Shown here piece after piece: positions 1 to 49,735 of a stretch of DNA of 64,000 nt. The translations under genes were made by a program, and so were the position numbers. The stretch's first letter is position 1; each line of letters opens with the position of its first letter. Source of the stretch: Mytilus edulis. Lineage: Eukaryota. Where the stretch lies: NCBI RefSeq assembly GCF_963676685.1, contig NC_092347.1, positions 82,832,001-82,896,000 of the forward strand, read 5' to 3'. A model generated the notes under the pieces. That model searched no databases. It saw nothing but the letters and a program-made list of their open reading frames with translations, and was not told where the DNA came from.

Positions 1-647
1 CAGTGTTCTCTAAAAACACACGAACTCATGGCGTATAAGTCAGTTCCGTGTTTTCCTCTTTTTAAATATTTTATATTTTGTTAGCTAAGAATGTATCATT
101 TATAATGAGGCCAACGTTATGTTTTTCTTTATTTGTTTTGATGGCCTGAAATTAAAAACAAACGCATAACATTTCTATGATGTCGTGTTTTTTTATGTTT
201 TATTTAGTACGAATATAATAAGGCAAGTTATTTTTATCAATATTTTCGATGACGGTAACAATTGTGTTGCATTATTGAAAGGAAGTTGATCACTGCATAT
301 GGTCAAATGGTTTGCTCTTTGTTGAAGGCCAGACGGAGACATGGTATTGTTCAAATCTTTGTCTTTTGTTTTTTATAAATATTGTCGCATTGTCAATCAA
401 AGTACAGCTCCGTATTTTTTGGTTTTATACGAATGTATAGTTTTCGTGATAAATCTAAGAACAAGAAGACTAAAGAAAAACGACATTACATCATACATCA
501 TTATATAACATTCATAGTATGAAGTATGTTTTGTGTGTTATTCTTCAGGACACACGACCATGTCTGTTTTTTTAATCGTCTTTTGTTATTTAGAAAATGC
601 TTTCGCAGCATTGATGCTTGAAATTTTTATTGTCTTTTATTATTCAG

Positions 648-2459
648 AAAATGCTACCGCAGTATTGAAGTCGTACATGGGTGCTGGAAACTCTAAGATC
701 ATGACAACAGTTTACAAATATGTGACTGGCATGTCTACTTCCTATATAACTATGGCTGATGACGGTTGTATACCAATGGCATATGAAGCAGCGGGTCAGA
801 ATGCGGATGGAGGTAAATCTATATACTTTTAACATATTGACCCCAGCGTTTCAATTATATGTTGTATTTGTAAACACAAGATACGGACCTAACTGTACAC
901 GAATAATCTTCATTTTAAGAAACAAATTATAATAAGTCTACAGGAATGCAGCACACGTATTCAACCTTACTGAAATAAAAGAGAGACAAAAGAGAGATAC
1001 TAAAGAATCAGACGGAATAATTAAATAATTAATGCTATGATTGCAAAAAAAACTAAAAATGATAAAAAGACAAACAACAGTATACAAAACAAAACATAGA
1101 AAACTAAAGAATTCAGCAATACGTTTCACATCAAAAACTGTGGTTGATCTCGTGTTCTCTGTTAATCTTGCTCCATATGTGACACAAGATATAAGATAAA
1201 CAAAATACCATAAAGCCCAATGATAATCTATATTTACATTTCAGGTGGATTCCAAATGACAGTTGAGTTTTTTGGAATAACACCAGGTATTGCAGATACG
1301 TCAGTCTTCAATGAACCAGCTCAGTGTGTAAGTATTGTTTTCGTTTTTCTTTTTGGAGAAACTAATTATAACCACTATGCTTATTGCATACAACAATTTT
1401 CTATTATATCATTTCAATAATATACATATATCCCTGCCAGTATCAACGTAAAGAGCATTTAGGCTGATTCACGAGCACTAAACCGCCCAAACAAAGAAAT
1501 ACAAACCACGTGACAATTAAAACTGGTGATGCAGCAACAAAAGTTGTATACAAAGTAAGGCATTTCTATAGATATTACTATCACATGTACAAACGAGTGT
1601 CATTTAAAATTGAGAATGGAAATGGGGAATGTGTCAAAAAAACAGCAACCCGACCATAGAGCAGACAACAGCCGAAGGCCACCAATGGATCTTCAATGCA
1701 GCGAGAAACTCCCGCACCCAGAGGCGTCCTTCAGCTGGCCCCTAAACAAATATGTATACTAGTTCAGTGATAATGAACGTCACACTAAACTCAGAATTGG
1801 CATGTTTTATTGTTACATATTTAAAACACAACCACGTGTTTATTTATTTCCAATGCTTACAATATAAGAATAAAAAGTCCAAGATGGGGTATCATCGAAT
1901 TTCCAGTAAGACAACTCTCTACTAAGGACCAATAACGTAGAAGTTAACAATTAAAGGTCACTATTTTCAGTTTTCCATATGTATGTCATTTTTGTTTTGT
2001 AAATTATAACAAGTGTGGACACAGATCTGTGTGGATAGTATGTGTGAATGTTTGACTGATTTCTGACAAAGAGACTTCTCTTGGGTTTTTTCACGCAGGG
2101 TTCTACATTATACTGTGTTGCACAGTGACAGCCAACCTGAGCCAAATACTAAACATTAGCAATGTTTTTAATCTAATATTAAGTTTTAATGTTCAAGGTT
2201 GTCATGGAGGAGAAACAAATTGCATTGATTTCCAAATAATCATGATAAAATAAATGCCACATCTTTGATATTGGATACATTTGTAGCTAGAAGAGGAACA
2301 CATTAGGTTTCTTTCTGCATTGTGTGATTTTTTGAAAGGGAGATGGTATCTGATTTTGTAAATTATAATAATTGTGGTTTATAATTTTTAATCGTTTTAT
2401 TTCTTTTACAGGGTGCAAATGTACCTGCATTTGCTGGAATTGGAGTTGGAAGACGATAA
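648..2459 (+). CDS. Ependymin-related protein, paralog 1 (3' part only; exons 1-3 lie upstream of the window)
   Basis: GT-AG exons 648-812 (165 nt, NATAVLKSYMGAG...MADDGCIPMAYE), 1245-1327 (83 nt, GGFQMTVEFFGITPGIADTSVFNEPAQC) and 2412-2459 (GANVPAFAGIGVGRR*). AATAAA at 2497-2502. Has the ependymin C-x-P and F-x-x-P-x-x-C motifs, and exon sizes and phases match the other three paralogs. Confidence 0.9.
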
Positions 2460-10076: not shown

Positions 10077-13000
10077 TTATTTTATGCAGATTGACGGAAT
10101 ATCAAAAATGGAAACATTCATAGGTGCCACCACTATTCCCATGTATTCCGCCGCCATTTTCATATCTTCTGCAAGTAAAAAAAACGAAACAACTTTTGTG
10201 TCATCTATATAAAGCTATTATCGTTTGGTAACCTACTACACTAATTTACAAATCTCTGCATTATGTTCTCAAATGGATAGCTATGTTAATGAAAATTACT
10301 CCAGACCTACACCATTCGCAGAAATGTTTTGTTAAGTTGCTCCGAGAGAATTGTTTGTCTCTGACATTGCATAAGGGGTAGGAATGACCTATTATGTAAA
10401 TTTTTAATCAATCAATCATTTTTAGAGTGGAACTTTGTTACCAAATATGTTGAGGTAGCATCAAGTAAACAATGCACATCATTTAAAAGTTATTGCAAGG
10501 ATTTAATCTAATGTACACAGCGGCAATGTACTCCCTCAACACGAGATGACTGCGTACTGTGTATTTGTGCATTTCGTATATACCAAATAACTGCACAGGT
10601 CTTGTAGTTGACTCATTATAGATATATCTAAAGGACAGATAATATTTTTGAAATAAATACATTTATCATAAAATGTTTATTTTAAGATAAGAAGCTAAAT
10701 TTACCGCCTGTTTCTGTAATACCATTGCCATCGACCATTACTGGTATACATCCATCGTCTGCCATTGTGAGATGTACATCAAGGTTATCTCTGGTAAAAT
10801 GGTACATTGTAGCTTTCAGAGCTGTCTTTCCGGATCCAATGAAAGACTCTGTAACTACTTCTGCGTTTTCTAAAACAAACAAGGAAACGGTTGCTATACT
10901 TAAAGCCATAAAAATACAGTCTGATTTCTTTATGTTGATTTAGTAGTTGATTCCCGCGATTTTCTGTAAAATATCACATACTACACATATCAGTGGTTAC
11001 AAGGGATGTTCATTTTCTAAATCCCGTGTTTATGTTGGTTTTTTATTCTTTTTCTCAGACCCCACTCTATTGTCTCACTTTATCCCACATCTCATTATTT
11101 TAACCCCTATAAACCAAAAATTCATAAAAGTAAAATCACAAAAATACCGAACTTCGAGAATTCTAAATGAAAAGTTTCTAAGTAAATGGCAAAATAAAAA
11201 GCTCAAACACATAAAACGAATAAATAACAAATGTCATACAATATTTCAATGGTGGCCGGTTAAGGCCATTTCGCGTTTTCACCCATCATATTCTATAGTT
11301 TTCGTGTTTTCGCTATTAGAACATGAAAGGCGAAAAAACGCGAAATGGCCTTAACCACCTGTCACCATTATATTCCTGACTTAATTAATTAAACAGTAAT
11401 TTTCTTATGAAGGAAATGGTGGATTCAACCTGTTTTAAAACTAATACTGTTCTTTCACGTACTGAATAATGTAATTGTGAGAATTCAAACACTTATACAA
11501 CGTGTAGGCAAACAAATAAGACATCTTATACTATCTTACTTGGTATACAACGTGTCGGCAGACAAATAAGACATCTTATACTATCTTACTTGGTATACAA
11601 CGTGTCGGCAGACAAATAAGACATCTTATACTATCTTACTTGGTATACAACGTGTCGGCAGACAAATAAGACATCTTATACTATCTTACTTGGTATACAA
11701 CGTGTCGGCAGACAAATAAGACATCTTATACTATCTTACTTGGTATACAACGTGTCGGCAGACAAAAAAGACATCTTAATATACTATCTTACTTGGTATA
11801 CAACGTGTCGGCAGACAAATAAGACATCTTATACTATCTTACTTGGTATACAACGTGTCGGCAGACAAATAAGACATCTTATACTATCTTACTTGGTATA
11901 CAACGTGTCGGCAGACAAATAAGACATCTTATACTATCTTACTTGGTATACAACGTGTCGGCAGACAAATAAGACATCTTATACTATCTTACTTGGTATA
12001 CAACGTGTCGGCAGACAAATAAGACATCTTATACTATCTTACTTGGTATACAACGTGTCGGCAGACAAATAAGACATCTTATACTATCTTACTTGGTATA
12101 CAACGTGTCGGCAGACAAATAAGACATCTTATACTATCTTACTTGGTATACAACGTGTCGGCAGACAAATAAGACATCTTAATATACTATCTTACTTGGT
12201 ATACAACTTGGCTCAGAGCTCGATACATTCATCGTAAAACATGCACCACCTTTGATAACATACTGAAGACCCTACAATATAAAACATGCACCACCTTTGA
12301 TAACATACTGAAGACCCTACAATATAAAACATGCACCACCTTTGATAACATACTGAAGACCCTATAATATAAAACATGCACCACCTTTGATAACATACTG
12401 AAGACCCTATAATATAAAACATGCGCCACCTTTGATAACATACTGAAGACCCTATAATATAAAACATGCACCACCTTTGATAACATACTGAAGACCCTAT
12501 AATATAAAACATGCACCACCTTTGATAACATACTGAAGACCCTACAATATAAAACATGCGCCACCTTTGATAACATACTGAAGACCCTACAATATAAAAC
12601 ATGCACCACCTTTGATAACATACTGAAGACCCTACAATATTAAACATGCACCACCTTTGATAACATACTGAAGACCCTACAATATAAAACATGCACCACC
12701 TTTGATAACATACTGAAGACCCTACAATATAAAACATGCACCACCTTTGATAACATACTGAAGATCCTACAATATAAAACATGCACCACCTTTGATAACA
12801 TACTGAAGACCCTACAATATAAAACATGCACCACCTTTGATAACATACTGAAGACCCTACAATATAAAACATGCACCACCTTTGATAACATACTGAAGAC
12901 CCTACAATATAAAACATGCACCACCTTTGATAACATACTGAAGACCCTACAATATAAAACATGCACCACCTTTGATAACATACTGAAGACCCTATAATAA

Positions 13001-14998
13001 AAATAGTATATAAGTAAAAGTAGTGTTTTTTTAGACTTCATTTTAATGCAACTAGGGATATTATGTTTTTAATACTTTTCAAAATGTCTTCTGTATTTTT
13101 CACAATTAATAGTAACAACATGAAAACATACGTTATGTTATGTTTCTCGTTTGAATTATAACTTTTACATTTGTCATTTCGGGGCCTTTTATCGCTGACT
13201 ATGCGGAATGGGTTTTACACATTGTTGAAGGTCTTACGGTGAACTATTAATAGTATTAATCTCTGTGTGGTTTTGTCTTTTGTAGATAGTTGTCTAATTG
13301 GCAATCATGCCACATTTCTTTTATATGTATAACTCCGATGGCCAATCCGAAATTATTTGTTTTTAGATTTTGCATTAAATTCTTTTAATCTACAATTTCG
13401 AAAAATTATGTCCTCGCAAAAATCATATTTACCCGATCGCGAACTACAGTTCAAAAATGTAATATAGTAAATATTTTCATCAAGAAAATATTTTTAATAA
13501 ATTTCAAATTCCAAACTGCTGCTACGATTGAAAGAATCAACTTTCATATTTTAGGGCAAAATACTGGCCATTTCGAGTGGCCAAATCCCAGATAATAAGC
13601 AACCTTAACGACGAACATTTATAATCCCTAACACAAACCTCTGTCTTCATAAATTTTCTCTATTTATTTGGTAACTCTTAATGGTTCTTTCTTTTAGTCA
13701 ATTTTGATACACTTATGAATGATGCTATTTTCTTTTATATATTCATGTATTTTATTTCGTTTTGATTGGTTTTTTTTTAACAACTTACTGTGCTAAAGTC
13801 TTGATAAACTTGTTGTAAATATTCAGGTCCACCATTAAGACTTACAGTTTGATTTACATAAACTTTCCGAATGGTTTCATCGACAACTGTGTCCTGAGAC
13901 ATCTGTACGAGAAGGCAGATTTATGTATTTAAACTTAAAATATTAAAAAAAATAAAAAATAGAATAACCAGCACAAACATTTAAGGATGTTCGTTTTGGA
14001 ATTTTTATAAGATTTTCGGAATCCTCTGGATTTATCCATTTGAATGCCTTAAAAGTTTTGCCCATTAACCCCCATTTTTCTTTTTATAAATCTTTTACAT
14101 GAATTGTATGATTATTAGCCACCTGTAAAAGTCTTATATAAATCTTTGTTTTTTTTTTTAAATATATTTGAGAACTTAAATATGTCAAAGATAAAGCTAT
14201 GAAAAATCAAGAGAGAACATTTTCCCGCCAAAATTTCAATGGCTAATATCTCGAAAACCCACACATTGTTTTTTTTTTTTTTGTTCCGTTATTAATCCCC
14301 TATCAATATATAATAGTGTTATTAAAAGCTTGTTATGTTGAAACTGAGTAGCGAACTTCCTTAAATATGACGATAGAAATAAAGTATGATCATTTGTGAA
14401 AGTTAAGACACTTCTGAAACAAGACTACTTTTAAAACTGAATTTTATTCAACAGACACGAGCTATAAGCTGGTGATTTTAGGAATCAATAAAAAATATTA
14501 TGTTAAAGACCACCATCAGTCAAAACACACATCGGAAACGTATAGTGTGCTTTGTTTTACTCAATTTGGATGAACATGATAGGCGGGTTTGCTTTATTAT
14601 TTTATTTGGATCACCTCATATGTCAATAAAATCTTTACTTTATGATAAGTTACGGAAGATGTTTCCAAATATGTTGCTTTCTTTTGGTTATGTATGACGT
14701 TGTCTTGCGGTCTCAGTGAAGTATAAATAAATAATGAATAAATAATGAAAACGGATCTATTTCCTCCCTCCTTTGTTTTTTTTAACAAACTACACAATGT
14801 GAGGACATTCTTTCGTGTATGCCGCTAATATCTTGTTTGAATATTGTAAAATAAATTAAAACTAACTTGCGTATGGTATTCATGTCCATCAACTGTTTTT
14901 GTATTTGAATCAATATATACAGTCCCCCTCCATTGTTTCGGGGGACAGCATGATAGTACTAAGGCAGGTAAAGCCAGAAGTAGGATGTTCTGGAACAT
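10077..14998 (-). CDS. Ependymin-related protein, paralog 2 (5 coding exons, ~193 aa, secreted)
   Basis: Exons 14998-14867 (signal peptide MFQNILLLALPALVLS then CCPPKQWRG), 13902-13789, 12271-12196 (GLQYVIKGGACFTMNVSSSEPSCIP), 10869-10705 (MADDGCIP) and 10168-10077 (EDMKMAAEYMGI...SIFDIPSICIK*). All GT-AG with consistent phases. Confidence 0.88.
11495..12207. repeat. 50-bp minisatellite (~14 copies) containing the exon-3 splice donor of EPDR paralog 2
   Basis: Unit acatcttatactatcttacttggtatacaacgtgtcggcagacaaataag. Its reverse complement contains TGTATACCAA|gtaagatag. Confidence 0.95.
12236..12998. repeat. 45-bp minisatellite (17 copies) containing the exon-3 splice acceptor and first 36 exon nt of EPDR paralog 2
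   Basis: Unit aaaacatgcaccacctttgataacatactgaagaccctacaatat. Reverse complement atattgtag|GGTCTTCAGTATGTTATCAAAGGTGGTGCATGTTTT. Confidence 0.95.
13985..14360. mobile_element. Kolobok-like MITE in intron 1 of EPDR paralog 2
   Basis: TTAA on both sides (13981-13984 and 14361-14364). Terminal inverted repeats (TIRs) GGATGTTCG / CGAACTTCC. Confidence 0.6.
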
Positions 14999-16197: not shown

Positions 16198-17808
16198 ATA
16201 TACAAAATTTAATCCTGGTATCTATTGTGAGTTTAGTCACAAAAATCATGTATTAGAAAAACTGTAGACAAACTTAAGAATTTAAATATATTAAACTTAT
16301 GAATTTAAAAATAGTAAACTTAAGAATTTAAAAATAGTAAACTTCAGAATTTAAAAATAGTAAACTTAAGAATTATTCAATTATATACATCCCGCCGTTG
16401 TGTTTTTATGCTTAGATAATTTTTGTGTTTATATGTCTTTCATTTTTGCAGATGTGTTTTTTTTAATAGTATATACCATTTAGGTGTCTTTGTAGACATA
16501 ATTTACAGATGTTTTTCAATCGTTCAATATGTATGAGCTTTCGATATTACCATATGATATGAGACTTTCCGTTTGAATTTTCCTTGGAGTCCGGTATTTT
16601 TGATATTTTACTATATTATATCCGATACATAAGCGATAACAATTGTACTATATCAAATGTGCATTTTAGTGATGCTCTAGACAAAATATTTGAAAATCAA
16701 AAATCTTATCTAAACGTTTAAGAGTGTAAACAAATCATTAAATGACCAACAGTGAAGCTATACCTAGAAATTTTTTAATTTCTGGGTACTTTCTCTTTTC
16801 TTGTATCTGTTCCCGATGATCGCTTCTAGATTTTCCGTCCAAGCCAGATGAACATTAAATTTCCATATAAAATAGGATAAGAGTAGATGTGGGATAAACA
16901 CCTTCTACAAATAACCAAAGACGTATTAAACCTATGCATTCGTGTTCAACCTTATGAAAAAGGAAACAATTGGGTCGCAATTCTTCAATAGAGTATATTG
17001 AAGTTGTACAAAGAACGTTAGCTTCAATTAGGGGGGGGGGCTAGGATGAAAAATGTTGTCCTGCTTTTTTTTTTAGTTGTAATCTCTGTCTGTCTTTTTA
17101 TTTTTTACTCTATTCGGTCCTGCCTTTTTTTTTACTAGTTTATCCTGACTTTTTTTTACACAAATTGTCATCCTTCCTTTTTTTTTAACAAGTTTCTCAT
17201 CCTGCCTTTTTTTTTACTCAAAACTCCTGTCCTGCAAATGGTAGCTCCCTTAATAAAATTATGTTGTGTGCATTATAATTTTGTCAAACGGACAAGTGTA
17301 AGAAAATATTTGAAACTTCTTCAAAATGTTCAAGTGGATATGTCATACTGCAAAATATTCAAGATATTTCAAATATACATGTGCAATATGAATTTACACA
17401 AACACGTCTATACACATATAGTATCCTCAGCCTCATGCACTTAGTCATTTGTTATGTATTGTGCTAGATACACAATACCGGAAATATATACTTGTTATAA
17501 GAATGTGAAACGGATGTATTAACGACAATACGATACGAAGTTTATATGGTAAGTTTGTTTTCTTTATATATTAAAATTGAATTATTCTTACATTATTAAT
17601 AGTGGCACTATTCAGCTACACTTGAAATGATAATCAATCTACATACATTAATTGTTTTCATTAAGGTGATGAATAGATACAAAATGCACCTAGATGTAAA
17701 AATTACAAGCAAAATAAAGATTTATGATTACATGTAAGTTTTCTTCAAGCTGGATAGAGAGAATTGAATGAAATAAAATTGTATAATAACTTAACCATTT
17801 CAATTAGT

Positions 17809-18257
17809 ATGAAATTCAAAACAGTGTAGCTGTGGCCATTGATTGACACATTAAAATCATTCATTGACTGGGACAATTTAGGTGAACGTTTGTATGTAAC
17901 GACCAATGCTCACTATGTACTTTTTAAAGAAACTTAAACTATGGGGTCACCAAAGGTTCTCAAAACCTAAATAAAGTAATTCGAAAAATTAATCAGAAAT
18001 AACACGATATTTTGATTTATATCAATTATATAAATCAAAACACAAAGTTTATTCCTGATTAATTTTTCGAATTATTTTATAATTAAAGGCGTTAAGAAAC
18101 CTTTGGTGACCCCACAGTTTAAATGTCTATCGTAGGTACGTCATGAACAGTGGTTGTTACAGACAAACGTTCACGTAAATGATCGTAAATTGTCCCAGTC
18201 AATGGATGATTTTAATGTGTCAATCAATGGCCACAGCTACACTGTTTTGAATTTCAT
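17809..18257. mobile_element. ~450-bp near-fully palindromic foldback/MITE
   Basis: ATGAAATTCAAAACAGTGTAGCTGTGGCCATTGATTGACACATTAAAATCAT... pairs with ...ATGATTTTAATGTGTCAATCAATGGCCACAGCTACACTGTTTTGAATTTCAT. Complementarity continues, with mismatches, to a centre near 18025. Confidence 0.85.
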
Positions 18258-18447
18258 TCTATATACAAATACATATCATTCTGTTCTAAATTTTTAATGT
18301 CGGGAAATGCTGATTTGCAACTGCTATTTTCGTTGAAACACGTAAATAATTGCAAAAGAAAACACGACGATCTGAATTTATGATTAACACTAAACTTAAT
18401 CATTTGCGTTCTTTTAGGTTTTAACTTTCCTTCTCTGACCTAGAACT

Positions 18448-21183
18448 ATGTCGACAAAGACAGACCTACAGGCGTTCGCCTCATTAGTGACTCGAAATGA
18501 TACTGAGGGGTGCAAAGAAAAACTTCTATCATCACAAGACAATACTAAAGAAAAACTAGTAAATACAAGGATAAAAGGATTTAAAACTGTCCTGCATATT
18601 GCTGCTGATCAGAAAGTTGTACATGAAATATGGAACTTACTTTTACCATATGCGTCTGAAATTAATTTGTACGAAAACATTTGTAAAAGTCCTCTTCGAA
18701 AAATTATTCCCTATGCAGATCAAGAACAGAACAATAAATGCTTTACAATAGGTTTTCTCCGTCAATACTATCAACTCAATAAGATAAGAAGTTGGTTAGA
18801 AATGACAAAAAATGAGACTAGCCAGAAAGTAAACACTTACAGAAATCATTTTCTGTGTAAACTTTGTCGACTTCGAGGAAGTGATGAAGTTGGCAATATT
18901 TCACAAACCGATATCATAGAATTTGCTCGGGAACTTATACAAACTTATCATACCGACCCAAATGGTGACAGTGAACACCGACCTTTACTTTGGGCCATGG
19001 AAACAGCTAATCTTCCTCTACTATCTTTGTTTTTGTCTTTCGGAGCAGATGCAAATTGCAGAGATGATGATGACTTTACACCTTTGTTATACTCTCATTG
19101 TTTACAGGGAAGTGATGCGAGTGTAGATATAGTGCTGCTGTTAGTTAAACATAATGCAGACATTAATATATCAGAACCGCAAGGAATCGTGACAGCATTT
19201 CATAAATTATTATTACTTTTGACACCTGAAGAACTCAAAATGTTCATGAAGAGATGTTCTCCTAAGGTTAAGTTATCATCAACATGTTGTGCATTACCCC
19301 TTCCTCCGATACACGGACTGTTGGTTCGAGGCCTTTCTGATTCCATATACCGAATGGATAAAGAGAAAATGCAAACAGATATAATAACTAAGGTTGAAAT
19401 ATTATCCAAATATGGACTTGACCTTAACCAAACCGATTTGCATGGTCGTACAATATTGCATTATGCTAGTTGGTTTAGATTCACACGTTTGTTGAAGTTT
19501 TTTTTGAATGTAGGAGGTCGACCATTTGTCAGAGACGCATTAGGCAGGACTTGTTTACATTATTCTGTTTTACATCCTTCGAGAAATTACAAGATAAGAA
19601 ATGTGGAGGAGGAATTGTCTGTATTAAAATTGTTATCTGAAAACATAGATAAGAAAGATTTAGATGCACAAGATAATTATGGAAGACGTGTCCAACACCT
19701 GTCTTTATTTGAAAACAACACTGCAGCATTGAATGGCATGGGTGTTTTCGGATTTGATATGAATGTTATCGATAACCAAGGGAAATCACCTTTGGATTAC
19801 GACTCGTTAAACATATTAACTAATGCAGCATTTATGGAGCAGCATTTTAAATGGGCAAATAATAATAAACCACAAGAAAATGAACTGCCATATTCGTTGA
19901 AGACATGCAGGACAAATGGAAGTACCATATTATATGAGAGAGAATCTGTGCATTGTGAATCAACAGATGTCAAGAGAGAAGATTTAAAAGGTGCAAAGCT
20001 AGTAAATCTTTTACTACATGATCATAACGTTGGACCATTAGTCATTAGTAACATTGAACGCACTATCTTTGAAGATGTCAAGAAGTTGGTTAATAAGATA
20101 TCAGAGCACTTGACTGAAATCGATAAAAATTTTCAATCGAAGATAGAATTAGCAGGAAGTATAAGTGAGGAAACAAAAATTCTACCACTTGACGAATTTG
20201 ACTTTCAGTTTCATTTAATCTATTTAAGTCCTCGGTTTTATTTCGATACATTTGAGCAAGCGAATGAAGTAACATTAAAAGATATCCGTAAAGATATCCC
20301 CGTGAAAAGAGACGGTATTACAGACACTGTACATACCGGGGAATCATTAAGCTGGAACATCTACGAAAAATTTAATTCCTTCATTTATACAGTACTCAAT
20401 TCAAATGATTTTTGGAAAGATTCACCATTTTATTGGAATTTTCTTCCAATTGCAAAATCTGTAGAATGGATACAAACGAACCTTGTCGTGGAGAGCTCTC
20501 TCACAGCACCCCTACGATTAAAATGGATAGGACTGGAAGCACGAGATCTGAACATAAATATTGATTTAGTACCTGTTATAGTTAAACAACGCATACCTGA
20601 CGTAGTCCAAAACTTGATTCCCTCTCCGGTTACACATTTTATTAATCATAGGGAATATCAATGGCATGTAATTTGCCGAAAGAGCGACTTTGCTCGTCTG
20701 TCGTTCCTAAATGTAGAGAGATGTATACTAATGCGGCTAATGACAGAAGTAAAAGATGCATATAAATTGACAAAGTCTTTGCGGAGTTTCTGTGATTCAG
20801 GATCATATTGCAGTCCCGAAATTATTACATCATATATGCTGAAGAATGCTTTATTCTTTGAACTTGACCAACAGCTGTCGTATGGTCTTCTTAATGACCA
20901 ACTGGTATTCCATAGCTGTTATACACCAAGTCATGAACTAGCATTACGACTAATGAGGTACAATCTAGCGTGTTCATTAAGAAATAGAACAGGTTATATT
21001 CACATTTGGGCACTAAAAATATTACATAGACTGAAAACTTGGTTCGCTACTGAAAACTGTGCATTCGTTTATTGCCGTCCAACCGTCGCATTCCCTGACA
21101 GCTATGAAGTCCGTGACGAGTACATGGAGCATCCCTATATTAAAGCATTGGATATGATGACGAACCTCCTTCTTAGCAAATAA
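18448..21183 (+). CDS. Ankyrin-repeat + Mab-21/cGAS-like nucleotidyltransferase (cGLR), 911 aa, single coding exon
   Basis: Ankyrin repeats: FKTVLHIAA, RPLLWAM...GADAN, FTPLLYS...HNADIN, GRTILHYAS, GRTCLHYSV, GKSPLDY. NTase signature AGSISEETKILPLDEFDF (~20152-20205), third acidic residue in INIDLVPVI (~20563), Mab-21 C-lobe ITSYMLKNALFF (~20830). Splice acceptor at 18417 upstream of the ATG. Confidence 0.92.
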   Translation: MSTKTDLQAFASLVTRNDTEGCKEKLLSSQDNTKEKLVNTRIKGFKTVLHIAADQKVVHEIWNLLLPYASEINLYENICKSPLRKIIPYADQEQNNKCFTIGFLRQYYQLNKIRSWLEMTKNETSQKVNTYRNHFLCKLCRLRGSDEVGNISQTDIIEFARELIQTYHTDPNGDSEHRPLLWAMETANLPLLSLFLSFGADANCRDDDDFTPLLYSHCLQGSDASVDIVLLLVKHNADINISEPQGIVTAFHKLLLLLTPEELKMFMKRCSPKVKLSSTCCALPLPPIHGLLVRGLSDSIYRMDKEKMQTDIITKVEILSKYGLDLNQTDLHGRTILHYASWFRFTRLLKFFLNVGGRPFVRDALGRTCLHYSVLHPSRNYKIRNVEEELSVLKLLSENIDKKDLDAQDNYGRRVQHLSLFENNTAALNGMGVFGFDMNVIDNQGKSPLDYDSLNILTNAAFMEQHFKWANNNKPQENELPYSLKTCRTNGSTILYERESVHCESTDVKREDLKGAKLVNLLLHDHNVGPLVISNIERTIFEDVKKLVNKISEHLTEIDKNFQSKIELAGSISEETKILPLDEFDFQFHLIYLSPRFYFDTFEQANEVTLKDIRKDIPVKRDGITDTVHTGESLSWNIYEKFNSFIYTVLNSNDFWKDSPFYWNFLPIAKSVEWIQTNLVVESSLTAPLRLKWIGLEARDLNINIDLVPVIVKQRIPDVVQNLIPSPVTHFINHREYQWHVICRKSDFARLSFLNVERCILMRLMTEVKDAYKLTKSLRSFCDSGSYCSPEIITSYMLKNALFFELDQQLSYGLLNDQLVFHSCYTPSHELALRLMRYNLACSLRNRTGYIHIWALKILHRLKTWFATENCAFVYCRPTVAFPDSYEVRDEYMEHPYIKALDMMTNLLLSK

Positions 21184-21402
21184 AAAGACGGACGTGATAC
21201 AAGCAGATGTAATTCGTACTGTCGTAGGGAAGTTTTAAATATCAAATAATGTTATTTTCCCCAGCATAACTTTACATCAATAGTATTTATGAAAGGTTAA
21301 ATGTTTTTTGGATTAGAAAAACAATAAGATAGTTTATATGGTACCAAGCTTAAAATTTGATACACCAGGCGCGCGTTTCGTCTTCATTGAGGAATTTCAA
21401 AC

Positions 21403-21726
21403 GGTCGGTCATTTAAAGACGTACCAACCGTATCATATACGTTGACGTATACGCATTTGCAGATTTACCAATGAACATTATGTGATCCCGAGCTTTCCTT
21501 GTATATACTTTCAATAATGCAAATGGGCAACTGATTAATTTCAAATGCTAGTATTTGATTGCGTAGCTGACTAAATTGTTGGAAAAGAGGGACGAAAGAT
21601 ACCAGAGGGACAGCGGGAAAAATATAATAGTCTTTAGCTCGGGATCACATAACATTTTTGGTATATCTGAAGATGATTATACGTCAACGTATATGATACG
21701 GTTGGTACGTTTTTAAATGACCGACC
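21403..21726. mobile_element. Inverted-repeat element (arms ~90 bp) 220 bp downstream of the cGLR stop
   Basis: GGTCGGTCATTTAAAGACGTACCAACCGTATCATATACGTTGACGTAT...GTGATCCCGAGCT versus AGCTCGGGATCAC...ATACGTCAACGTATATGATACGGTTGGTACGTTTTTAAATGACCGACC. Confidence 0.8.
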
Positions 21727-24689
21727 TCTATTACAAAAGTATTGCATACTAATTTTACACTCTTTCGTTTTCTATGTTGTGTTATGTGTACTATTGTTTG
21801 TCTGTTTGTCCTTTTCAGTTTTAGCCATGGCGTTGTCAGTTTATTGTAGATTTATGAGTTTGACTGTCCCTCTTGTATCTTTCGTCCCTCTTTTACAGCT
21901 GATATGATATGTTTTGATATTTCCAGACACTTTCATTTGAATTATCATTGATATGGTCATAATTGTAAATCAAACGTTTGCAAAACATTCTAAGGATGTT
22001 GTAGACAAAACGAGCAGATTTATATTTTCACACAATATAAAAATAAGAAGATGTGGTTCGATTGCCAATGAGCCAATGAAACAAATCACTACAAGCGACC
22101 AAATGCATTTGAAATTAACAACTATAGGCCACCGTACGGCCTTCAACCATGAACGAAGAATATATCATATAGTCAGCTATAAAAGGCCCCAAAATGACGA
22201 AGTATTGTTTTATAAAATCTATAACACATACAATGAAAGATAAAGATTGTCGCAGGTTCCTTAATGAATGAACAAAATATCTTTCTATGAATCAGTACCC
22301 ATCTGGGTGATATGAATATGTAAAGATTAAGTATATTACAGTAAAAGAAACATTAAAGTTAAAATATTTCATTTGCATAAATACAAATGTGATAAACCAC
22401 AAGTCAAACTATTGTTTAAACACTTTTATCAAATGGTAAGTAAATTTAAATTGATGTAACAAAGACGAAAAAGAACGAAAAAACCTTACGAAAAGCTGAA
22501 CTTAGATGATGCTTTGGGCGTGGTCATGTTTAATTATCTAACCCATAAGGTGAACGAGGTTAATATATTTATAGCTACTAGGCATTTATTTGGACGCCTG
22601 ATAAGATTTTCTCAATGTTTTCTTAGTTTGTCTGAATAATTTATGCATTTAAAAAAAAATAATGATACAATTTTTTGTATAAAAAATAAATCTTTTCTCA
22701 GCTGTTTTTACAACTTACTCGACTCACAGCATTCAGTCGGGTATCCCTGTAAATTCGTAACTGTTTAACAAAGGAGATTATACAGTACAAATTATATCTA
22801 TTAAATATGGTTAGTTATACAATACATTGATTATGACTATTTGTTTTTCAAGTCTTTATTATGTAATGTAAATACAGAAATTGTACCATCTATTGTCCGA
22901 TGTTGTTTATAGGTTAATCGTTGATCAAAATACTTCACGGATTATTAAAGAGTATATAACACATGTAATGATGATGAGAGCAGATGAATCTCAACTGAGT
23001 TTTGTTGAGTTTTGGTAATATTTCCATTGGTTTATAAGAGTCATGATTTATCCTAAAACATCAAAGATGTTTCCAGTCAGCAGACAGTACAGGGTCAAAT
23101 TTTCATAAAACACATCAAAATAGAAATATAGATCAGATTATAATTATTATAAGTCCATAAACATCAATATTTTGAAGGGAAAAAAAGCGGATGATCGAAG
23201 TTGGAAAAGAATACAATAAAGATAACTTCTTCCAAATTCATAACGTTCAAAATACTTTTTACTAATCGGATTTTAAGTTTTATACATTCGTTGTGAATTT
23301 TCCTATGGTGTCACAGGTAATCGCACCGAGCTTATTAAACTAGGAAGTCACGATTTTCGACATCTAAAGTCTTTACTACTATTCTTTTGATAGAATTTAT
23401 AAATATTGTGACGAGGACTATTCAGGAAGTGCGGTCAATTAAATGAAAAGTTTCTACATTTCGCTAGCAAAGGGTCACGATCCACTCCTCTCCTGTATGC
23501 ACAAGAGTTGCAAAAACAAACAAAGAAACTTTTGAGACATACACCATTTCAACATATCGTTTTAAAGAATTAGATAGCCGGAATAGGAGTGGTTTAAATG
23601 TCATTGTGTTTTATGCATTTCCGTGTCTTAGTGTATAAATAATTAGCGAATAGTTGCATCTTATAGTGAAATATCTCCATTTGTCTTTAGCTTTTATTAA
23701 AACAGATTTTTTTTAAAGAAGTTAAGATATTCAAATAGTTTGGCGTCGATCATCACCGAAGAGATCTTAATTGACAAATTGTGCATCCGATGCAGTAAGT
23801 TAATATTGTTGTAATGGTTGCTACATTAATTTTCATAAAACATTTGAAGGATTTTTTAAAAACTTTATGAATATTAGAGTTGTCTATCTTTGTACAAAGA
23901 CTCGTGTGATACTGTTATGGATCTTTATATTTATTAATATAACATTACGATTATGTTAAAGGCAGAAAACAAGTACACTCTAGAACATAAATGTTTTCTT
24001 AAATTTCATTATGTTCTCTATCACATGATAGAAAAATAGAAAAGTGTAAGAACAAAAAGTATGTTTGCTAAGTATTAAGAAAAAACAATAAGTGAAAATG
24101 GTTGCATGTAAAATGAAGGATTGTCAATCTTCTTCATAAAAGGGTATTAGAATGCATTGTAATGCTAATGAGAAGAAGAACATAAGCCGGATTCACGTTA
24201 AAAAAATTGTTTTGTTTATTTCAATACAGTATATAATTTATCTTCATTTGTAAATGACTATCTGATGTGTTTACTTGAATTATCTTGATTTGGTCATACT
24301 TATAATTGTTCACAAAACGTTTTTATTTTTTTTTTGAAATAGATAGATTTTCTTGCAAAGAAATATACTATATTAGCTGTAACTAGCAAAACCGTTTGGA
24401 ATGTTAGGTATGCATGCTAATCATCTTAGTACATAACTTATCTTTGTTGAATTTTTTGAATCGATGGTCACATACGGTATATTTTTTGTAGTCAAAATGC
24501 GCATAATGCATACAATTTTTTAAGCCTGGTATATATCATTTTATTATTAATTTGCCTTTTCGTGCGCTACATTAATTGAGCTATTTACAAGATTTTTGTT
24601 CATTATGGTATTTGTAATTTCAGTACTTTATTACCTCAGTTCGATAAATGTATCATGCTCTTTTACATAACACAACACATAAAGAGAAA

Positions 24690-29985: not shown

Positions 29986-30920
29986 AGGGTAAATAATCGC
30001 TGTGAATATATCTAGATATTATGGTAACCATGCAAAATCATAACTATCCAAATATTTTAAAATTTTATTCGAAAAGGGATACCCGTAATAGTTAATCAGC
30101 ATTTGCTAGCATCAACACATCACATCATACTCTGCAATGAAATAAAAGGCAAAATTATTATCACCATCATCATAACTACAATGATTGCGTTATATAATTA
30201 TCAAAAGTACCAGGATTATAATTTAGTACGCCAGACGCGCGTTTCTTTTTCATAAGACTCACCAGTGACGCTCAAATCAAAATAGTTATAAAGCAAAAAA
30301 AGTTCAAAGTTGAAGAGCATTGTGGACCCAAAATTCCAAAACGTTGTGCCAAATACGGTTAAGTTAATCTATGCCTGGAGTAAGAACATCCTTAGTTATA
30401 TAATGGTAAACAAAGAATTGTAACTATTAAACACTATTTTAAACAAAACAAAAACATGGAAACAAAATGCTATTTTTTACAAGTTAGTTTAAAACTGCCA
30501 GCAATTCTGCATAGTGTTTACCCTTTTTTATTGATTTTGTGTGAGGTATCAAGTAAGCCGTTATTTCAGAATATAGTGTTTTTCAATCAAATTGCAAGAT
30601 TTAAACATCGGTAAACTACTTTTGCCTAATAACATTAATGGTACCATTTTTATTTTGCAACTGATGCACATTTCGATAAAAAATAAACAATATTATTTTT
30701 TTTTGTGATGCTCATGTCAAAACATCTTAAAATAAAATCCAAATCTTATTTCAGATAAAAAGAGCTAATATTCGAAACGGAAAAACAAGTTTATCCAATA
30801 CCGGTGGAGGAATCAGAGCTTTGCATGATGGAAATATATATTATATATATTTTGAAATGATTTGTTTAATTTTGTTAAAGCATATTTTAATAACAAAGAA
30901 TTCTGACTAAATTTACTTAC

Positions 30921-33900
30921 ACAACTGGCTGGTAAATTAAATACAGATTGATCAGTCGCAACTGCTTCAATTCCCATATACTGTATTCCCATTTTAACGG
31001 ATTCTATATAAAAAACAACGATAAAACGGTTACAGTGAGACAAGTCAATGACGTCATTTATACAAATTTATGTAACAATTTTGAGAAATATAGATAATTG
31101 GTAAAGCTCATTATTCTGAATAGTTTGCTCCTTTTAGATTTACTCTATTTTTATCGTTTCAAAAAAAAATAGACAAAAAATGGATTTTACCCCTATGTTC
31201 TGGTTGGCAGGCAGGGTCATTAGACACATTTTGTTAATCTACTACCCTAATGATAGTTTTGGACAAGTTTGGTTTTTATCTCAGCAGTTTCAAGGGATAG
31301 ATTTTGTAAAAAGATTACAAAAATTTACAAAAATTGTTAGAAATCAACAATAAAGGGCAGTAACTCCTTAAAGTTGAATTTCTAGTACATCTCAATTTAC
31401 TGAACAATATTGCTGTTTACAGTTTTTCTCTATCTATAATAATATTCAGGAAAATAGCCAAAAACTGCAAAATTTCCTTAACATTGCCAATTCAGGGGCA
31501 ACAACCCAACTACCGATTTTTTTATTTGTCTTAAAATTTCAGGACAGAGAGATCTTAAATTGATGAACTTTTTTATCTGTCAGATTTGCTCTAAATGCTT
31601 CAGTTTCAGAGTTTAAATTCACTATGCATTTTTACCCCTGTAATCGTTTTGTAGCCATGGTGGCCATCTTGGTTATCGGGCTAGGTCATCAAACACATTT
31701 TAAAAACAATTAGATACCCCAATGATGATTGTGGCCCATTAATTTCAGAGGAGAAGATTTTTATAAAAGTTAACAGACGACGACGAACGACGACGGATCA
31801 CGAACGCCAAGTGATGAGGAAAGCTCTTTTGGCCCTGAGGGCCAGGTTAGCTTAAAACTAAAAAAAACACGTATCTAAAACTAATATATCAATAAAGAAA
31901 ATATCAAACAACTAATAAATTTAGTGTAAAGACACCATTAACAGTAAAAAACACCTACATAACATTGTGTTAGATAGGTGTGTAGATTGTTTTGATATTA
32001 ATCAAGCCGAGGCTTTCCCATGTGAATTGTTTTACAATTTGTCTTTTCAGCACCGTTGGTTGCTTGCACCCTTTTTGTTTGAACTATTTAGCATTTCGTA
32101 TGATGGGTAGTGGATTTATTAGCTGAAATAAAAGTATGCGACTCTTTAAAGGTTGTAAATACCTCCTTTTCTGTTCATTCCTGCACCCTCGTAAAAAATT
32201 GGAACACAGCCATCATCTGCAACAGTCAGGTAAACCAACATTTGTTCATCTTCAAATCTATACATTGTTGTTTTCACCTTAGCTGCTCCAGCACCCATGT
32301 ACGACTGATTCATTACAGTTGCATTAGCTGGAATAAAAATAAATAACTGCTACAATCGTTTTTTAAAAACTGGAATCCAAACTTTCAGTTCATAATCTTT
32401 ATGATATTGTTATGGGCAGAAAAGAAAAATGCTGATAAGTATTATACTACAATCACAAATAACTCAACTTTAAATGTCTTTCTCTTAAAAATGAAAATTA
32501 TACATTTTCTGCCTGATGTTCTGCCTCTGAAGCACTTTGATGAATTTATCCTCATCAGTTAAGCACAGCCAAACATTTGAAAGCCAGGAATGCGTAAACG
32601 CCCTGCCACTTTGAGATGAGATTTAATACCAAAAAGGACTTTAACGTATACGTAATATCAAAATTTATCCAAAGGTCAACTTTGCTTAAAGGGAGTCGAC
32701 AGCTTTTTTTTTTTAATATTTTGTGATGCAAATTACTTACTAAAAGAAAGATACAATAAGAATGCAGTCTTATTCTCATTTTTACCTTCAATTGATTTTA
32801 TATGTATGATCTAAAGCTTATATGCTAATCAAACGCAGGAGTCTCGTTCAGAGCGTTTAAGCGTTGAGGTATTATTGACCAAGAGAAGGACATTGAATCA
32901 AAGTACTACACAGTAAAAACTTCATGTTAACTGTGTTTACATATTTCTATTTATTTCTTGTATTTCTCTGTTTGAATATTGTATGATGAATGCATATAGG
33001 AATACGGAGATATTACTATTTTGGTAATATTTTGTTAATAATTTGATAGTGTTAGAGCTAGCAACTAAAACTATCTTTTTTGTAACTTACTTGGTATGCA
33101 GCCTGGTTCCGTGGTTGTGATATTCATCTTCGTACATTTGTTATCCCGGACTATGTATTCCATACCCTGCACAATTAAATAGAAAGATCAATATCACAAA
33201 AAACAACACAATTGTAATGCTTCATCAAAGGAGAAAAGCTATTAATAGAGCATTTGCATAATTCACGTATCAGGATACGTGCACAGATCGACGAATACGT
33301 ATCGAAAAGATTTGTTTACAATAATGATTTTACCCCGATCTCAAATAAAATTTAATGCATTATATAATATTTTCATCGGGACCAACTTGACTTAATTTAT
33401 CCTTTCCTCATATACGTGTTATACGATACGTCGATACGGATACGCCAGCAAATTCGTGATTAATGCAAATGCTCTAATGATCAGAATTTCGCCATTAAAA
33501 GTATATTCGGTCTATAATTTTAAAACATTAAAGAAGATAATAATATAACTTCACATTCCAGGCATATTTTGCACCTGTCCTAAGTCAGAATCTGATGTAC
33601 AGTAGTTGTCGTTTGTTTATGTAATATATACGTGTTTCTCGTTTCTCGTTTTGTTTATATAGATTAGACCGTTGGTTTTCCCGTTTGAATGGTTTTACAC
33701 TAGTAATTTTGGGGCCCTTTATAGCTTGTTGTTCGGTGTGAGCTAAGGCTCCGTGTTGAAGGCCGTACTTTAACCTATAATGGTTTACTTTTTAAATTGT
33801 TATTTGTATGGAGAGTTGTCTCATTGGCACTCACACCACATCTTCCTATATCTATATATGTCTTATATTATGTATTATGTATAGTAATGACTTTTTAATT

Positions 33901-41400: not shown

Positions 41401-43462
41401 AAACAGTCTGTGCACCTAATTTGATCAAATAATTCGAACTGCATTGCATAAAATGAAAATAAAAAAAAATCATGCAAGACTTACTTAAATTAATTATACC
41501 TTTTGGGACGAGAAAACAATCCGTTGACACCAAAACGCAAAGGCCACCAATAGACCAACATTCAATTTTCTGACTACTAATTAGATATGGAAAATTTGAA
41601 CTAACATAAAATTTGTTTAATGGCGTCCATTTCAAAATGTGGGACAGGGGGTTAGCCTGAACAATATGATTATGTAATGGAATATGCTTACATCTTCAGA
41701 AACAAAATGTTCTCAAATGATTTGATATTCACTATTTTATATTTTACCTTTTTTTGTAGAGAATCATACAAAAATAATTCAGTCTTATTTCGGAGCTGGA
41801 AGCTCAAAGGTTATGGCTACAATGTACAAATTCAATATGGGCCAGAACGTTATCTATGCCACTATGTCCGACGATGGATGCATACCTCTGGCTTATGAAG
41901 CATCAGGAGCAACTGAAGATGGAGGTAATAGTTCGGAGCTACTTTAATTATTTCGATCAGATTGACAATTAAATGCATGGGAAAGCTTGATACTAAATTT
42001 GTTGTATGTTATACTCAATTTGTGTTAACACGTCTTGAACGGATTGCCTTGGAGATGTAAACAACTGCAGTTCGTTTTTTTTTATGGCAATGTGTAGTTC
42101 ATCTTAAGCAAACTTTAAGACAAACCTTTGGCATATGAAACCTCGGAAGAAACTGAAGGTGCAGGTAATAGTAAGAGCTACTTTAAGTATCTTCTATCAA
42201 AGTGAATATCTAATTCCTATAAATAACTAACTTGAAAAAAAAAATGTAGGATTCGCAATTTAAATTATTTATAGCGCCATTATATAATATTTTGATATTG
42301 TCCAGTTGGGGGAAAACATGATATTTAATTTGTTTATGTTATATTTAATTTGTGTACACACGTCTTGAGCGGATTTCCAAACAAATGTAGTTCGTTTTTT
42401 CATGGCAATGCCTTGATCATCTTAACCGGAATACAAGGCAAAGACAAAATATCAGATATCTGGCAGTTTCAATTCACGATATATATAGCATAACTTAAAC
42501 TGATAAACTGACATCCGTGTACTATTAAAAGTATAAACATATGTTGGAACTGCTTTTTTGAATATCACTAACATCATCAAAGAAAGGCACCATTTCCCAA
42601 CGTATGTTTTATAAATGCAAAAACTTAAAAAAATCAAATCATAGCAATCAAACTTAACTTTAAAGGATTCAAATTTTAAATTAATTTAATTGATCGCACA
42701 TGTGTATACAACTGTAACTTTTTTTTTATAATTTGACCTCATTTCGAAGAATGTGAAGAAAACATTCCCTTCCAGCTAGAGCACTTATTTTAACTCCTGG
42801 TGTCTGTTTGATTAAAATTACACAAATATTTAGTTATATATGGTGAAATGCTCATATGTTGTTACTTTACACTTATATTAATTTCTTATAGGTGGATATC
42901 AAATGACTGTCGAGTTTTTCGGAATTACCCCAGGAGTTGCATCCACATCTGTATTTCAAACACCAAAAAATTGCGTAAGTAGTATTTCACATCAGAATTA
43001 CCTTTATATATTCATCCACAAAAGTACTTAAGATTTTTATGGCACATTTTTTTTTGTACACATCAATTAGAAGAAAATGTAAAATTATGACTGCATTAAT
43101 GAAAAATATGAATTTACTGTAACGTCATTAAAAAGCAAAATTTGGGGATATGCACTCCAGGAACATTTAGGATAATCTGACATGGAGAAGAAACGTCGCC
43201 CAAATTATTATTTTGTTGTTAAAATGCAGCTAATTACAAAATACGTTCAGCATAACTATCTGTTTGTATCAGGGGTTGTGTCAAACAGTAAATAGGTTGA
43301 ACGACTTTGCAGTTTAACTGTATTTATTGGTGCTTCATAAATGTATAACCAAATAAACGGAAATGATTCATACTAAAATATGTTCTTGAACTTGATTACT
43401 CTAATGTTTATTCATTTTTTTAGCCGATGCCAAAACCAGTCATATCCGGACTTGGAAAATAA
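38431..43462 (+). CDS. Ependymin-related protein, paralog 4 (6 coding exons, ~206 aa, secreted)
   Basis: Exons 38431-38562 (MFRYTALIVLPALVWS then CCPPSKWEG), 39755-39865, 40279-40369 (EPGCVP), 41760-41924 (MSDDGCIPLAYE), 42892-42974 (GGYQMTVEFFGITPG...SVFQTPKNC) and 43424-43462 (PMPKPVISGLGK*). Confidence 0.92.
40425..41210. repeat. 37-bp minisatellite (~21 copies) in intron 3 of EPDR paralog 4
   Basis: Unit tgtctgtcgaatgactgttctggttacctcttggtgt. Confidence 0.95.
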
Positions 43463-48359: not shown

Positions 48360-49735
48360 GTTTACAAATGCAATGCAGATTCCAACTGCTCCACGAAACC
48401 TCTTTCTAAATTATTAACATCTATTTTATCAGCAATCAAAGCCGAGCTCCAAAGTTATCATGAAACTGCCTTTTCTAGAGGTGGCGTGAATCAGATGTGG
48501 ATACTACAAAATTCCAAAGATCTTTTATAGTCATACAATCTAAGACTCTCTCATCTTGCAATAGTATTAAAACATTTGACTTTTCTACACTTTACAGAAG
48601 TATTCCCCATTCCAAACTAAAAAACAAATTGAAAGAGTTGGTATTACTTTGTTTCCTCAAATAGAATGGTGAACGTAGATATAAGTATCTTGTCTTGGGG
48701 AGGGATAAGTTTTACTTTGTAAAGAATCACTCTGATTCAAACAAACAATTCTCTGAAACTGACATTATCAAGATGCTTGACAATATATTTGTAACGTTTG
48801 GAGGACGTGTTTTCAACAGACTGTCCGAATTCGAATGGGAACCAGTTGTGTCCCTCTTCTTGCAGACTTGTTTCTTTATTATTATGAGGCTGACTCCATA
48901 CAGGAACTTCTTAGGGCACAAGTTAAGTTAGCAATATCCTTAAACTTTACGTTCCGCTATATTAATGATGTTCTCTCACTAAATAATACAAAATTTGGTG
49001 ACTATGTTGAACGAATCTATCCAATCGAACTAGAGATAAAGGATACTACAGATACAGCTAAATCTGTCTCATATCTTAACCTACATCAAGAAATTGACAA
49101 TGAGGGTCGATTGAAAACAGAACTTTACGACAAAAGTGATGATTTCAGCTTCCCAAATGTGAACTTTCCATTTCTATGTAGCAACATTTCAGCAGCGCCT
49201 GCATACGGAGTATATATCTCTCAACCGATACGATATGTCCGGGCTTATATTTCCTATGATGATTTCCTTGATAGAGGATTGCTACTCACAAGGAAGCCAT
49301 TAAACCAAGAGTTCCAAATTGTGTAGTTGAAATCATCCCTTCGTAAATTGTACGGACGCCATCACGAGTTTGTTGACTGTTATGGAATAACCGTTTCACA
49401 GATGATATCGGATATGTTCCTTATGTCGTAACTACAATACCCTTCCTTTTCACGAATGTGACCTACCGAATAAGACAATTTTTATCGGATTTGTAATAAC
49501 ATAAGCAACACGACGGGTGCCACATGTGGAGCATGATATTCTTACCGTTCCGGAACACCTGAGATCACCCCCAGTTTTGGTGGGGTTCGTGTTCCTTAGT
49601 CTTTAGTTTTCTATGGTGTGTCTTCTGTGTTATTATTTGTCTGTTCGTCTTTTTATTTTTAGCCATGGCGTTGTCAGTTTATTTTCTATCTACGAGTTTG
49701 ACTCTCCCTCTGGTATCTTTTGTCCCTCTTTTAGA
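48360..49735 (+). mobile_element. 5'-truncated, frameshifted Penelope-type retroelement (RT remnant + 3' tail)
   Basis: IKTFDFSTLY, MGTSCVPLLADLFLY, FRYINDVLSLNN (mutated YIDD), LYDKSDDF, YGVYISQPIRY. Contains stops and frameshifts. Confidence 0.78.

Follow-up and report, generated by a model that had tools for sequence, protein, structure and literature searches.

The question raised by this Mytilus locus is what a single long open reading frame lying among ependymin-like genes encodes, and whether its position there carries any functional meaning. The window, the whole 64,000-nt stretch analysed here, corresponds to C4:82832001-82896000 of the 1.37-Gb Mytilus assembly. Our preferred answer, to which we give a probability of roughly 0.6, is an intact, transcribed Mytilus gene for a cGAS-like receptor (cGLR) fused to ankyrin repeats (ANK-cGLR). 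The protein is predicted to be a ligand-gated, second-messenger nucleotidyltransferase (NTase) regulated by its ankyrin region, and the position of the gene among ependymin-like genes is read as incidental. The gene and the parts of its protein are the following.

18448..21183 (+): coding sequence (CDS), 911 aa plus stop codon, an ATG-to-stop frame; an identical protein, P0001, is on record.
18448..19857 (+): N-terminal ankyrin/helical-repeat region, residues 1-470, with repeat blocks at 158-247 and 313-451; conserved in P0003-P0006.
19858..20019 (+): variable linker, residues 471-524, whose length varies in the subfamily alignment.
20020..21180 (+): cGAS/Mab-21-fold nucleotidyltransferase domain, residues 525-911, delimited by profile, predicted model and fold comparisons.

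Because the G+C content of the DNA around the frame is only ~34%, an uninterrupted frame of 911 codons is far beyond chance.

The identity of the C-terminal domain emerged from profiles. A PDB search with the single C-terminal sequence gave no match. A profile of the C-terminal part of the subfamily (P0001-P0006, described below) matched 39 distinct PDB sequences, all of them cGAS, a cGAS orthologue or cGLR1 (best E 9.4e-9), and three segments, GS...EFD, RLSF and SYMLKN, aligned to cGAS in this search. At E<=1e-3, an exhaustive profile search recovered 485 representative proteins, of which 150 reach E<=1e-10; most of the 485 are 800-1100 aa long, with the matched domain at the C-terminus. Conservation was read from an alignment of the window domain with 48 profile-found proteins (49 rows), in which Pfam Mab-21 (PF03281) is present in 38 rows, Mab-21_C (PF20266) in 16 and ankyrin families in 35. 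The Pfam link to Mab-21 is transitive, running through these relatives and not through the window protein itself. The conserved segments of the domain are located as follows.

20155..20202 (+): active-site motif GSISEETKILPLDEFD, residues 570-585 (G570, S571 ... E583, D585), aligned to GSYYEHVKISAPNEFD of mouse cGAS.
20560..20574 (+): IDLVP strand, residues 705-709, carrying the third catalytic carboxylate, D706 (the invariant D182 of the 49-row alignment, on strand 177-189 of the model).
20695..20718 (+): RLSFLNVE (R750, S752, E757), matching WRLSFSHTEK of cGAS; E757 is invariant and S752 nearly so.
20830..20847 (+): SYMLKN, residues 795-800 (S795, Y796, K799), matching SYHVKT of cGAS; K799 (K275 of the alignment) is invariant.

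Across the 49 rows, G570, E583, D585, D706, E757, K776 and K799 are invariant, and S571 and S752 nearly invariant. The family criteria for a cGLR/Mab-21 NTase were those of Slavik 2021 and Li 2023, and their active-site pattern, G-[GS]-x(9-13)-[ED]-h-[ED]-h ... [ED], is found in the window protein as G570-S571 ... E583-F-D585-F ... D706. The motifs quoted in the initial annotation (GS...DEFD, IDLVP and SYMLKN) are all present; its spacing GS-x-E should read GS-x2-E, a trivial slip.

The divergence of the domain is equally clear. Identity to other ANK-Mab-21 proteins is 18-25%, and in a maximum-likelihood tree quickly built from the NTase columns, the subfamily forms a clade with 100% support inside the ANK-Mab-21 radiation, on a stem of 1.28 changes per site. 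It is because of this long stem that Pfam misses the NTase of the window protein. Within the very large expansion of Mab-21/cGLR genes in bivalves, the gene thus belongs to a divergent subfamily centred on mytilids.

A structural model was generated for the NTase domain using AlphaFold. A run with 6 sequences gave a predicted local distance difference test score (pLDDT) of 40 and was discarded; the 49-sequence run was used, and its model has a pLDDT of 85.3 and a predicted template modelling score of 0.85. The top Foldseek matches are all cGAS (probability 1.00), and re-alignment to mouse cGAS spans the whole model (Z 24.1; root-mean-square deviation 3.0 Å over 302 residues). A scan independent of Foldseek gave the following scores.

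Tribolium Tc-cGLR: Z 22.0
Oyster Cv-cGLR1: Z 21.8
Mouse cGAS: Z 20.4
MiD49: Z 19.9
MB21D2: Z 19.8
Coral Sp-cGLR1: Z 19.8
MAB21L1: Z 16.6
Bacterial cGAS/DncV-like nucleotidyltransferases (CD-NTases): Z 13-15
OAS1: Z 13.4
Terminal uridylyltransferases (TUTases) and poly(A) polymerases: Z 9-12

The cGAS-like active site that had been proposed for this protein is thus borne out by the model, a bilobed cGAS-type fold with its active-site residues complete. The fold scores and the conserved residues therefore assign the domain, whose acidic triad is complete, to the animal clade of cGAS/Mab-21 proteins. In the ESM Atlas, the window protein falls in a molluscan cluster of 'Mab-21-like nucleotidyltransferase domain-containing' proteins with ankyrin repeats (score 0.99). 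The earlier label of Mab-21 NTase is one that neither Pfam nor NCBIfam recognises in the protein directly, but it is upheld by the subfamily profile, the domains of the relatives and the predicted fold.

Comparison with characterized proteins defines what is shared and what is particular. Mouse cGAS (4K9B) is the best overall structural match, and the GS...EFD, RLSF and SY..K segments of the two proteins align. Identity is 17%, however, and the ankyrin region stands in place of the basic unstructured N-terminus of cGAS. No insertion resembling the zinc ribbon of cGAS was seen in the window NTase, a comparison made without a residue-by-residue check. Cv-cGLR1 (Crassostrea virginica, 8GJW) and Tc-cGLR (Tribolium castaneum, 7LT2) share the fold over the whole domain, with 311-312 residues aligned, and 8GJW is also matched in sequence by the subfamily profile (E 5.5e-7). 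These two cGLRs differ from the window protein in their low identity to it (~14-15%) and in lacking its additional ~470-aa ankyrin region; Tc-cGLR is dsRNA-sensing by its entry title, whereas the window NTase has an isoelectric point (pI) of 6.2. MiD49/MiD51, MB21D2 and MAB21L1 also share the fold (Z 16.6-19.9). MiD49/51 and MAB21L1, which are not known as signalling enzymes, differ from the window protein in that the latter keeps a complete acidic triad.

The N-terminal half carries ankyrin repeats. At residues 158-241 and 323-372 it is recognised by the Pfam families Ank_2, Ank_4, Ank and Ank_5 (E 1e-16 to 5e-10), and chains of DARPins (designed ankyrin proteins) in the PDB align to residues 168-247 and 313-451. 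From the positions of these matches, the N-terminal ~470 aa therefore consist of ankyrin/helical repeats in blocks and not of a continuous canonical array; the ~450-aa array described in the initial annotation holds as to the repeats, though not as to their continuity.

A word-based protein search retrieved a subfamily of the same architecture, P0002-P0006, with ~35-86% identity to the window protein and precomputed Pfam Ank domains; the three NTase motifs are kept in all of them. Subfamily members are 52/36/33/35% identical to the window protein over their whole length and 53/41/35/40% identical in the C-terminal part, so the ankyrin and enzyme halves are conserved to about the same degree. 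The same kind of search with the C-terminal domain alone returned just two Mytilus fragments. The ankyrin and NTase parts both lie on a single transcript contig, and the architecture is that of a polypeptide joining ankyrin repeats to a cGLR NTase.

This architecture had been thought to represent an undescribed receptor, and here the literature decides otherwise. Li et al. 2023 (Cell 186:3261; bioRxiv 10.1101/2023.02.22.529553) curated 3,020 cGLRs, 87% of them stand-alone enzymes, and report that some are fused to ankyrin or tetratricopeptide repeats (Fig. 1C, S2A), with ANK and death-domain fusions in coral cGLRs (Stylophora pistillata; Fig. 4C). The same study counts 218 cGLRs and 9 STINGs for M. 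galloprovincialis and 119 and 8 for M. coruscus (the 8-9 STINGs of Mytilus species being given in Table S5), and its Table S2 includes M. coruscus accessions carrying Ank domains. The fusion is thus already catalogued, Mytilus included, and the gene is a divergent new member of a known fusion type rather than a new kind of receptor. Like the catalogued ANK-cGLRs of Stylophora pistillata and Mytilus coruscus, the window protein has an N-terminal ankyrin region, a C-terminal NTase and a complete putative active site, and it occurs in one of the taxa with an extreme cGLR radiation (bivalves, cnidarians). Unlike them, its subfamily is missed by Pfam Mab-21, is only distantly related to other ANK-Mab-21 proteins and sits on the long stem noted above. 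Named relatives within the wider ANK-Mab-21 family come from Orbicella, Ruditapes, Mercenaria and M. californianus.

The gene is transcribed, and its 5' untranslated region (UTR) is spliced with two alternative donors. Most of the sequence words of the gene are contained in 20 public runs, 14 of which are small contig sets (40-290 Mb, against 1.37 Gb for the genome) that were taken as RNA by a guess. Four contig sets, from four studies and two organisms, were compared with positions 16800-22700 of the window, and their spliced GT..AG joints argue that the contigs are real transcripts. The transcript and the repeats around it have the following structure; MITE stands for miniature inverted-repeat transposable element.

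17513..17547 (+): minimum extent of variant a of the non-coding 5' exon, with a GT..AG joint 17547->18417 in run X10 and donor GTAAGT.
17673..17733 (+): minimum extent of variant b of the non-coding 5' exon, with a GT..AG joint 17733->18418 in run X2, 61 nt on the upstream side, and donor GTAAGT.
17805..18261 (no strand assigned): MITE-like hairpin in the 5'-UTR intron, arms 17805-17880 and 18186-18261 (76 nt), 97% complementary.
18418..21432 (+): single coding exon, with a 30-nt part of the 5' UTR, the CDS and ~180-250 nt of 3' UTR, from the contigs; acceptor TTTTAG at 18417.
21403-21897: MITE-like hairpins directly after the 3' UTR, with 69-nt arms, 91% complementary.

A 2974-nt contig of run X1 covers 18417-21359, and the variant-a exon end is also found in X1, with one mismatch; contigs of X2 extend to 21432 and those of X10 to 21416. 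The statement that the gene lies all in one exon is correct for the CDS and the 3' UTR and needs amending for the 5' end, where a spliced non-coding exon lies upstream. Contig depth reaches thousands at both MITE-like sites (the 5'-side region being 17785-18375), and the hairpins therefore belong to very abundant transcribed repeat families.

The genomic setting of the family was examined in the same assembly. At least 149 Pfam Mab-21 matches were found (from the 150 scored out of 510 candidates), most of them in open frames of 600-950 aa, and they are spread over all chromosomes; the huge expansion asserted for this family is real in this mussel. Five STING_LBD (PF15009) exon matches lie above the cut-off, on C3 and C8. 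The only close paralogues of the window gene (34-37% identity) are two tandem copies at C5:1020338-1031771. In-frame stops interrupt one of them; the second is distributed over three frames, and one of its breaks falls inside a lysine/A-rich run. Since both are interrupted, the window gene is the only intact member of the subfamily in this assembly. Another subfamily is represented at C14:48861842-48893031 by a tandem trio of ~910-aa ANK-Mab-21 genes, two of which have intact long frames, the third being divided into frames of 247 and 664 aa.

Two ependymin-like genes lie on each side of the cGLR gene, at the level of remote homology, which confirms that it is embedded in an ependymin cluster, as had been claimed.

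518..1417 (+): ependymin-like gene 1, two recognisable exons (frames 518-829 and 1214-1417).
10080..10939 (-): ependymin-like gene 2, two recognisable exons (frames 10685-10939 and 10080-10214), with a sub-threshold match to Pfam Ependymin at E 0.0022.
30816..32349 (-): ependymin-like gene 3, two recognisable exons (frames 32149-32349 and 30816-31067), with a sub-threshold match to Pfam Ependymin at E 0.0059.
41726..43028 (+): ependymin-like gene 4, two recognisable exons (frames 41726-41944 and 42882-43028).

The window is not among the matches listed in a whole-genome Pfam Ependymin search. Comparison of its frames with the genome's own above-threshold ependymin exons identified eight frames (E down to 1e-4). 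They pair up, in co-linear order, as four sets of two exons, and these sets are mutually paralogous (E 1e-12 to 2e-22). With exons compared one at a time and not as a spliced model, three frames match Pfam Ependymin (PF00811) at E 0.002-0.03, with 14.7-18.6 bits against a cut-off of 32.3, and these sub-threshold matches fall at the expected positions of the model.

Other features of the window include a 760-aa retrotransposon frame, RNase H/integrase-like, at 7003-9285 (+) between ependymin-like genes 1 and 2. A minisatellite with long repetitive frames of MFYIVGSSVCYQRWC units, at 12213-13041 (-), adjoins ependymin-like gene 2. A 163-aa frame at 48835-49326 (+) looks like a fragment of a mobile-element protein, and a 384-aa frame at 54242-55396 (+) is rich in Ser, Glu and Asn.

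The state of the gene in related mussels bears on whether it is maintained. Its orthologues are the following, with identity given to the window protein.

A second M. edulis assembly: 912 aa, 96%.
Transcript contig: 907 aa, 95%.
M. coruscus: 913 aa, 85%.
M. trossulus: 308 aa, 93%; truncated model.
M. californianus: 515 aa, from residue 400, 84%; truncated model.
M. galloprovincialis: fragments of 492, 494, 412 and 217 aa, 79-97%.

The NTase half of the gene occurs in two deep types. Two M. galloprovincialis proteins, P0181 (VDI40125) and P0007 (VDI06675), are ~82% identical to the window protein in this half, and their NTase type comes a little nearer to those of M. coruscus and M. californianus (85-87%). 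The ANK halves found with it on one 377-kb M. galloprovincialis contig match the window at 94-99% identity. No ~80% identical NTase copy was found in this genome. The second type may represent either a paralogue that has been lost or an allelic lineage of long standing.

Several of these observations weigh against an intact, signalling ANK-cGLR and have to be set beside its support. Pfam and NCBIfam report no nucleotidyltransferase family, Pfam Mab-21 included, in the whole protein or in its C-terminal 432 aa, even at E<=10. Proteins of the Mab-21 fold with an intact-looking core can be non-enzymatic, as is MiD49 (Z 19.9). The RNA nature of the contig sets was a guess, for which the splice joints argue, and our literature searches found no paper characterising the activity, product or ligand of an ANK-cGLR. 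Both C5 paralogues are broken, and the models of the M. trossulus, M. californianus and M. galloprovincialis orthologues are truncated or fragmented. Finally, single bases are deleted from transcript-like contigs at 18898 (X1), 20969 (organism B) and 20261 (one of two organism-B contigs), in each case outside homopolymers, with predicted protein ends after 156, 843 and 607 aa respectively. The truncated models and the frameshifted contigs hint that the gene is dispensable, and it behaves like a fast-evolving, perhaps dispensable, mussel immune gene. Taken further, the same observations would fit a gene on its way out, intact here by chance, under relaxed constraint and with no maintained function in much of the species complex; some runs of the same studies contain next to none of its words, and residues 386-523 (19603-20016, the last repeats and the linker) carry 12 non-synonymous against 2 synonymous listed differences from organism B, compared with 9 against 12 in the remaining CDS. 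We consider this unlikely, though it deserves to be taken seriously. The frame is open over 911 aa here, and frames of 912 aa (a second M. edulis assembly), 913 aa (M. coruscus, 85% identical) and 907 aa (the transcript contig) are open elsewhere; the short orthologue models may be annotation errors. The 35 listed coding differences from organism B (21 non-synonymous and 14 synonymous, from a partial list outside which 96 further differences lie) give an overall ratio of non-synonymous to synonymous differences per site (pN/pS) of ~0.40, and no invariant position is affected by those listed. Catalytic and nucleotide-binding residues are invariant among members just 35-40% identical, and this invariance at 35% identity argues that the gene has been kept for a long time. 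It is also rather unlikely that the gene is maintained for a role other than second-messenger synthesis, with the domain acting as a scaffold similar to MiD49/MiD51 or MAB21L1, or as an RNA or protein transferase whose target is recruited by the ankyrin repeats. The structural closeness of MiD49, MB21D2 (19.8) and MAB21L1 (16.6), an acidic pI at odds with the known nucleic-acid-activated cGLRs, and ESM Atlas neighbours that include Ank proteins with a Pfam MTPAP-like core would all suit such a role. Yet the full acidic triad and the cGAS-like RLSF and SY..K segments are invariant, the best structural matches are active cGAS and cGLRs, and TUTases and poly(A) polymerases score far lower, at just Z 9-12.

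The remaining alternatives concern how the gene came to lie where it does. The suggestion that it was retroposed, as a recent processed retrocopy or as a transposon-captured gene inserted into the ependymin cluster, accords with its intronless CDS and with the MITE-like repeats on either side. It is disfavoured by the 5'-UTR intron, spliced at GT..AG joints from two alternative donors; by a 3' end past which there is no poly(A) tract; by the absence of direct repeats bracketing the gene, the flanking elements being separate hairpin MITEs; and by the fact that long uninterrupted frames are usual for Mab-21 genes throughout this genome. Retrocopy and capture were rejected on these grounds, and we hold this origin to be highly improbable. 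As little credence can be given to a functional immune locus, in which the cGLR and its ependymin-like flanks would be co-regulated or would pair a sensor with secreted effectors. The four ependymin-like genes, two on each side, are what speaks for it, and this grouping is what the initial annotation had in mind. However, sampling of ~47 kb (4 x 10 kb plus the paralogue loci) about the nearest paralogues, at ~1.02-1.03 Mb of C5, turned up no ependymin-like exon, and therefore nothing points to a functional linkage. In addition, the ependymin-like genes lie on both strands and 5-10 kb away, with transposon remains in between; the other Mab-21 loci are scattered over all chromosomes; and ependymin-related proteins are secreted, whereas cGLRs are cytosolic.

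The reading we prefer, an ANK-cGLR with a working enzyme, leads to the following proposal for its mechanism. The C-terminal domain would act as a ligand-gated nucleotidyltransferase and its product would be a cyclic di- or oligonucleotide second messenger, read by one of the mussel STING paralogues. The N-terminal ankyrin array would serve as the regulatory module, either binding a protein ligand or partner or keeping the enzyme off until binding occurs. Direct sensing of double-stranded DNA or RNA on the usual basic groove seems less likely, the NTase domain being mildly acidic: its pI is 6.21 (43 K+R against 48 D+E), a whole-domain figure and not a surface map, and the basic surface or high pI typical of nucleic-acid-sensing cGLRs (cGAS, Tc-cGLR, Dm-cGLR1 type) is not reflected in it. 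Li et al. 2023 (bioRxiv 10.1101/2023.02.22.529553) report a higher pI for dsDNA- and dsRNA-responsive cGLRs, and the two values together mildly favour a putative non-nucleic-acid trigger for the window ANK-cGLR. The placement among ependymin-like genes would be a by-product of gene birth-and-death and not a functional unit.

A more specific version of this mechanism is offered tentatively, as a speculation we regard as doubtful. The ankyrin array may be a protein sensor, for a pathogen effector or for damaged self, with residues 386-523 as its specificity surface, and the two NTase types of the M. edulis complex could signal differently. If true, this would define a new ligand class for cGLR signalling.

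Taken by itself, the gene is one more in a family of hundreds. Its subfamily shows that Pfam-based counts of bivalve cGLRs overlook whole subfamilies. Most animal cGLRs have no known ligand, and this gene is a concrete candidate for non-nucleic-acid sensing by cGLRs; its value as such lies in its transcription, the completeness of its active site, the orthologues on record and the quality of its structural model. It is thus a reasonable candidate for the first biochemical study of a repeat-fused cGLR.

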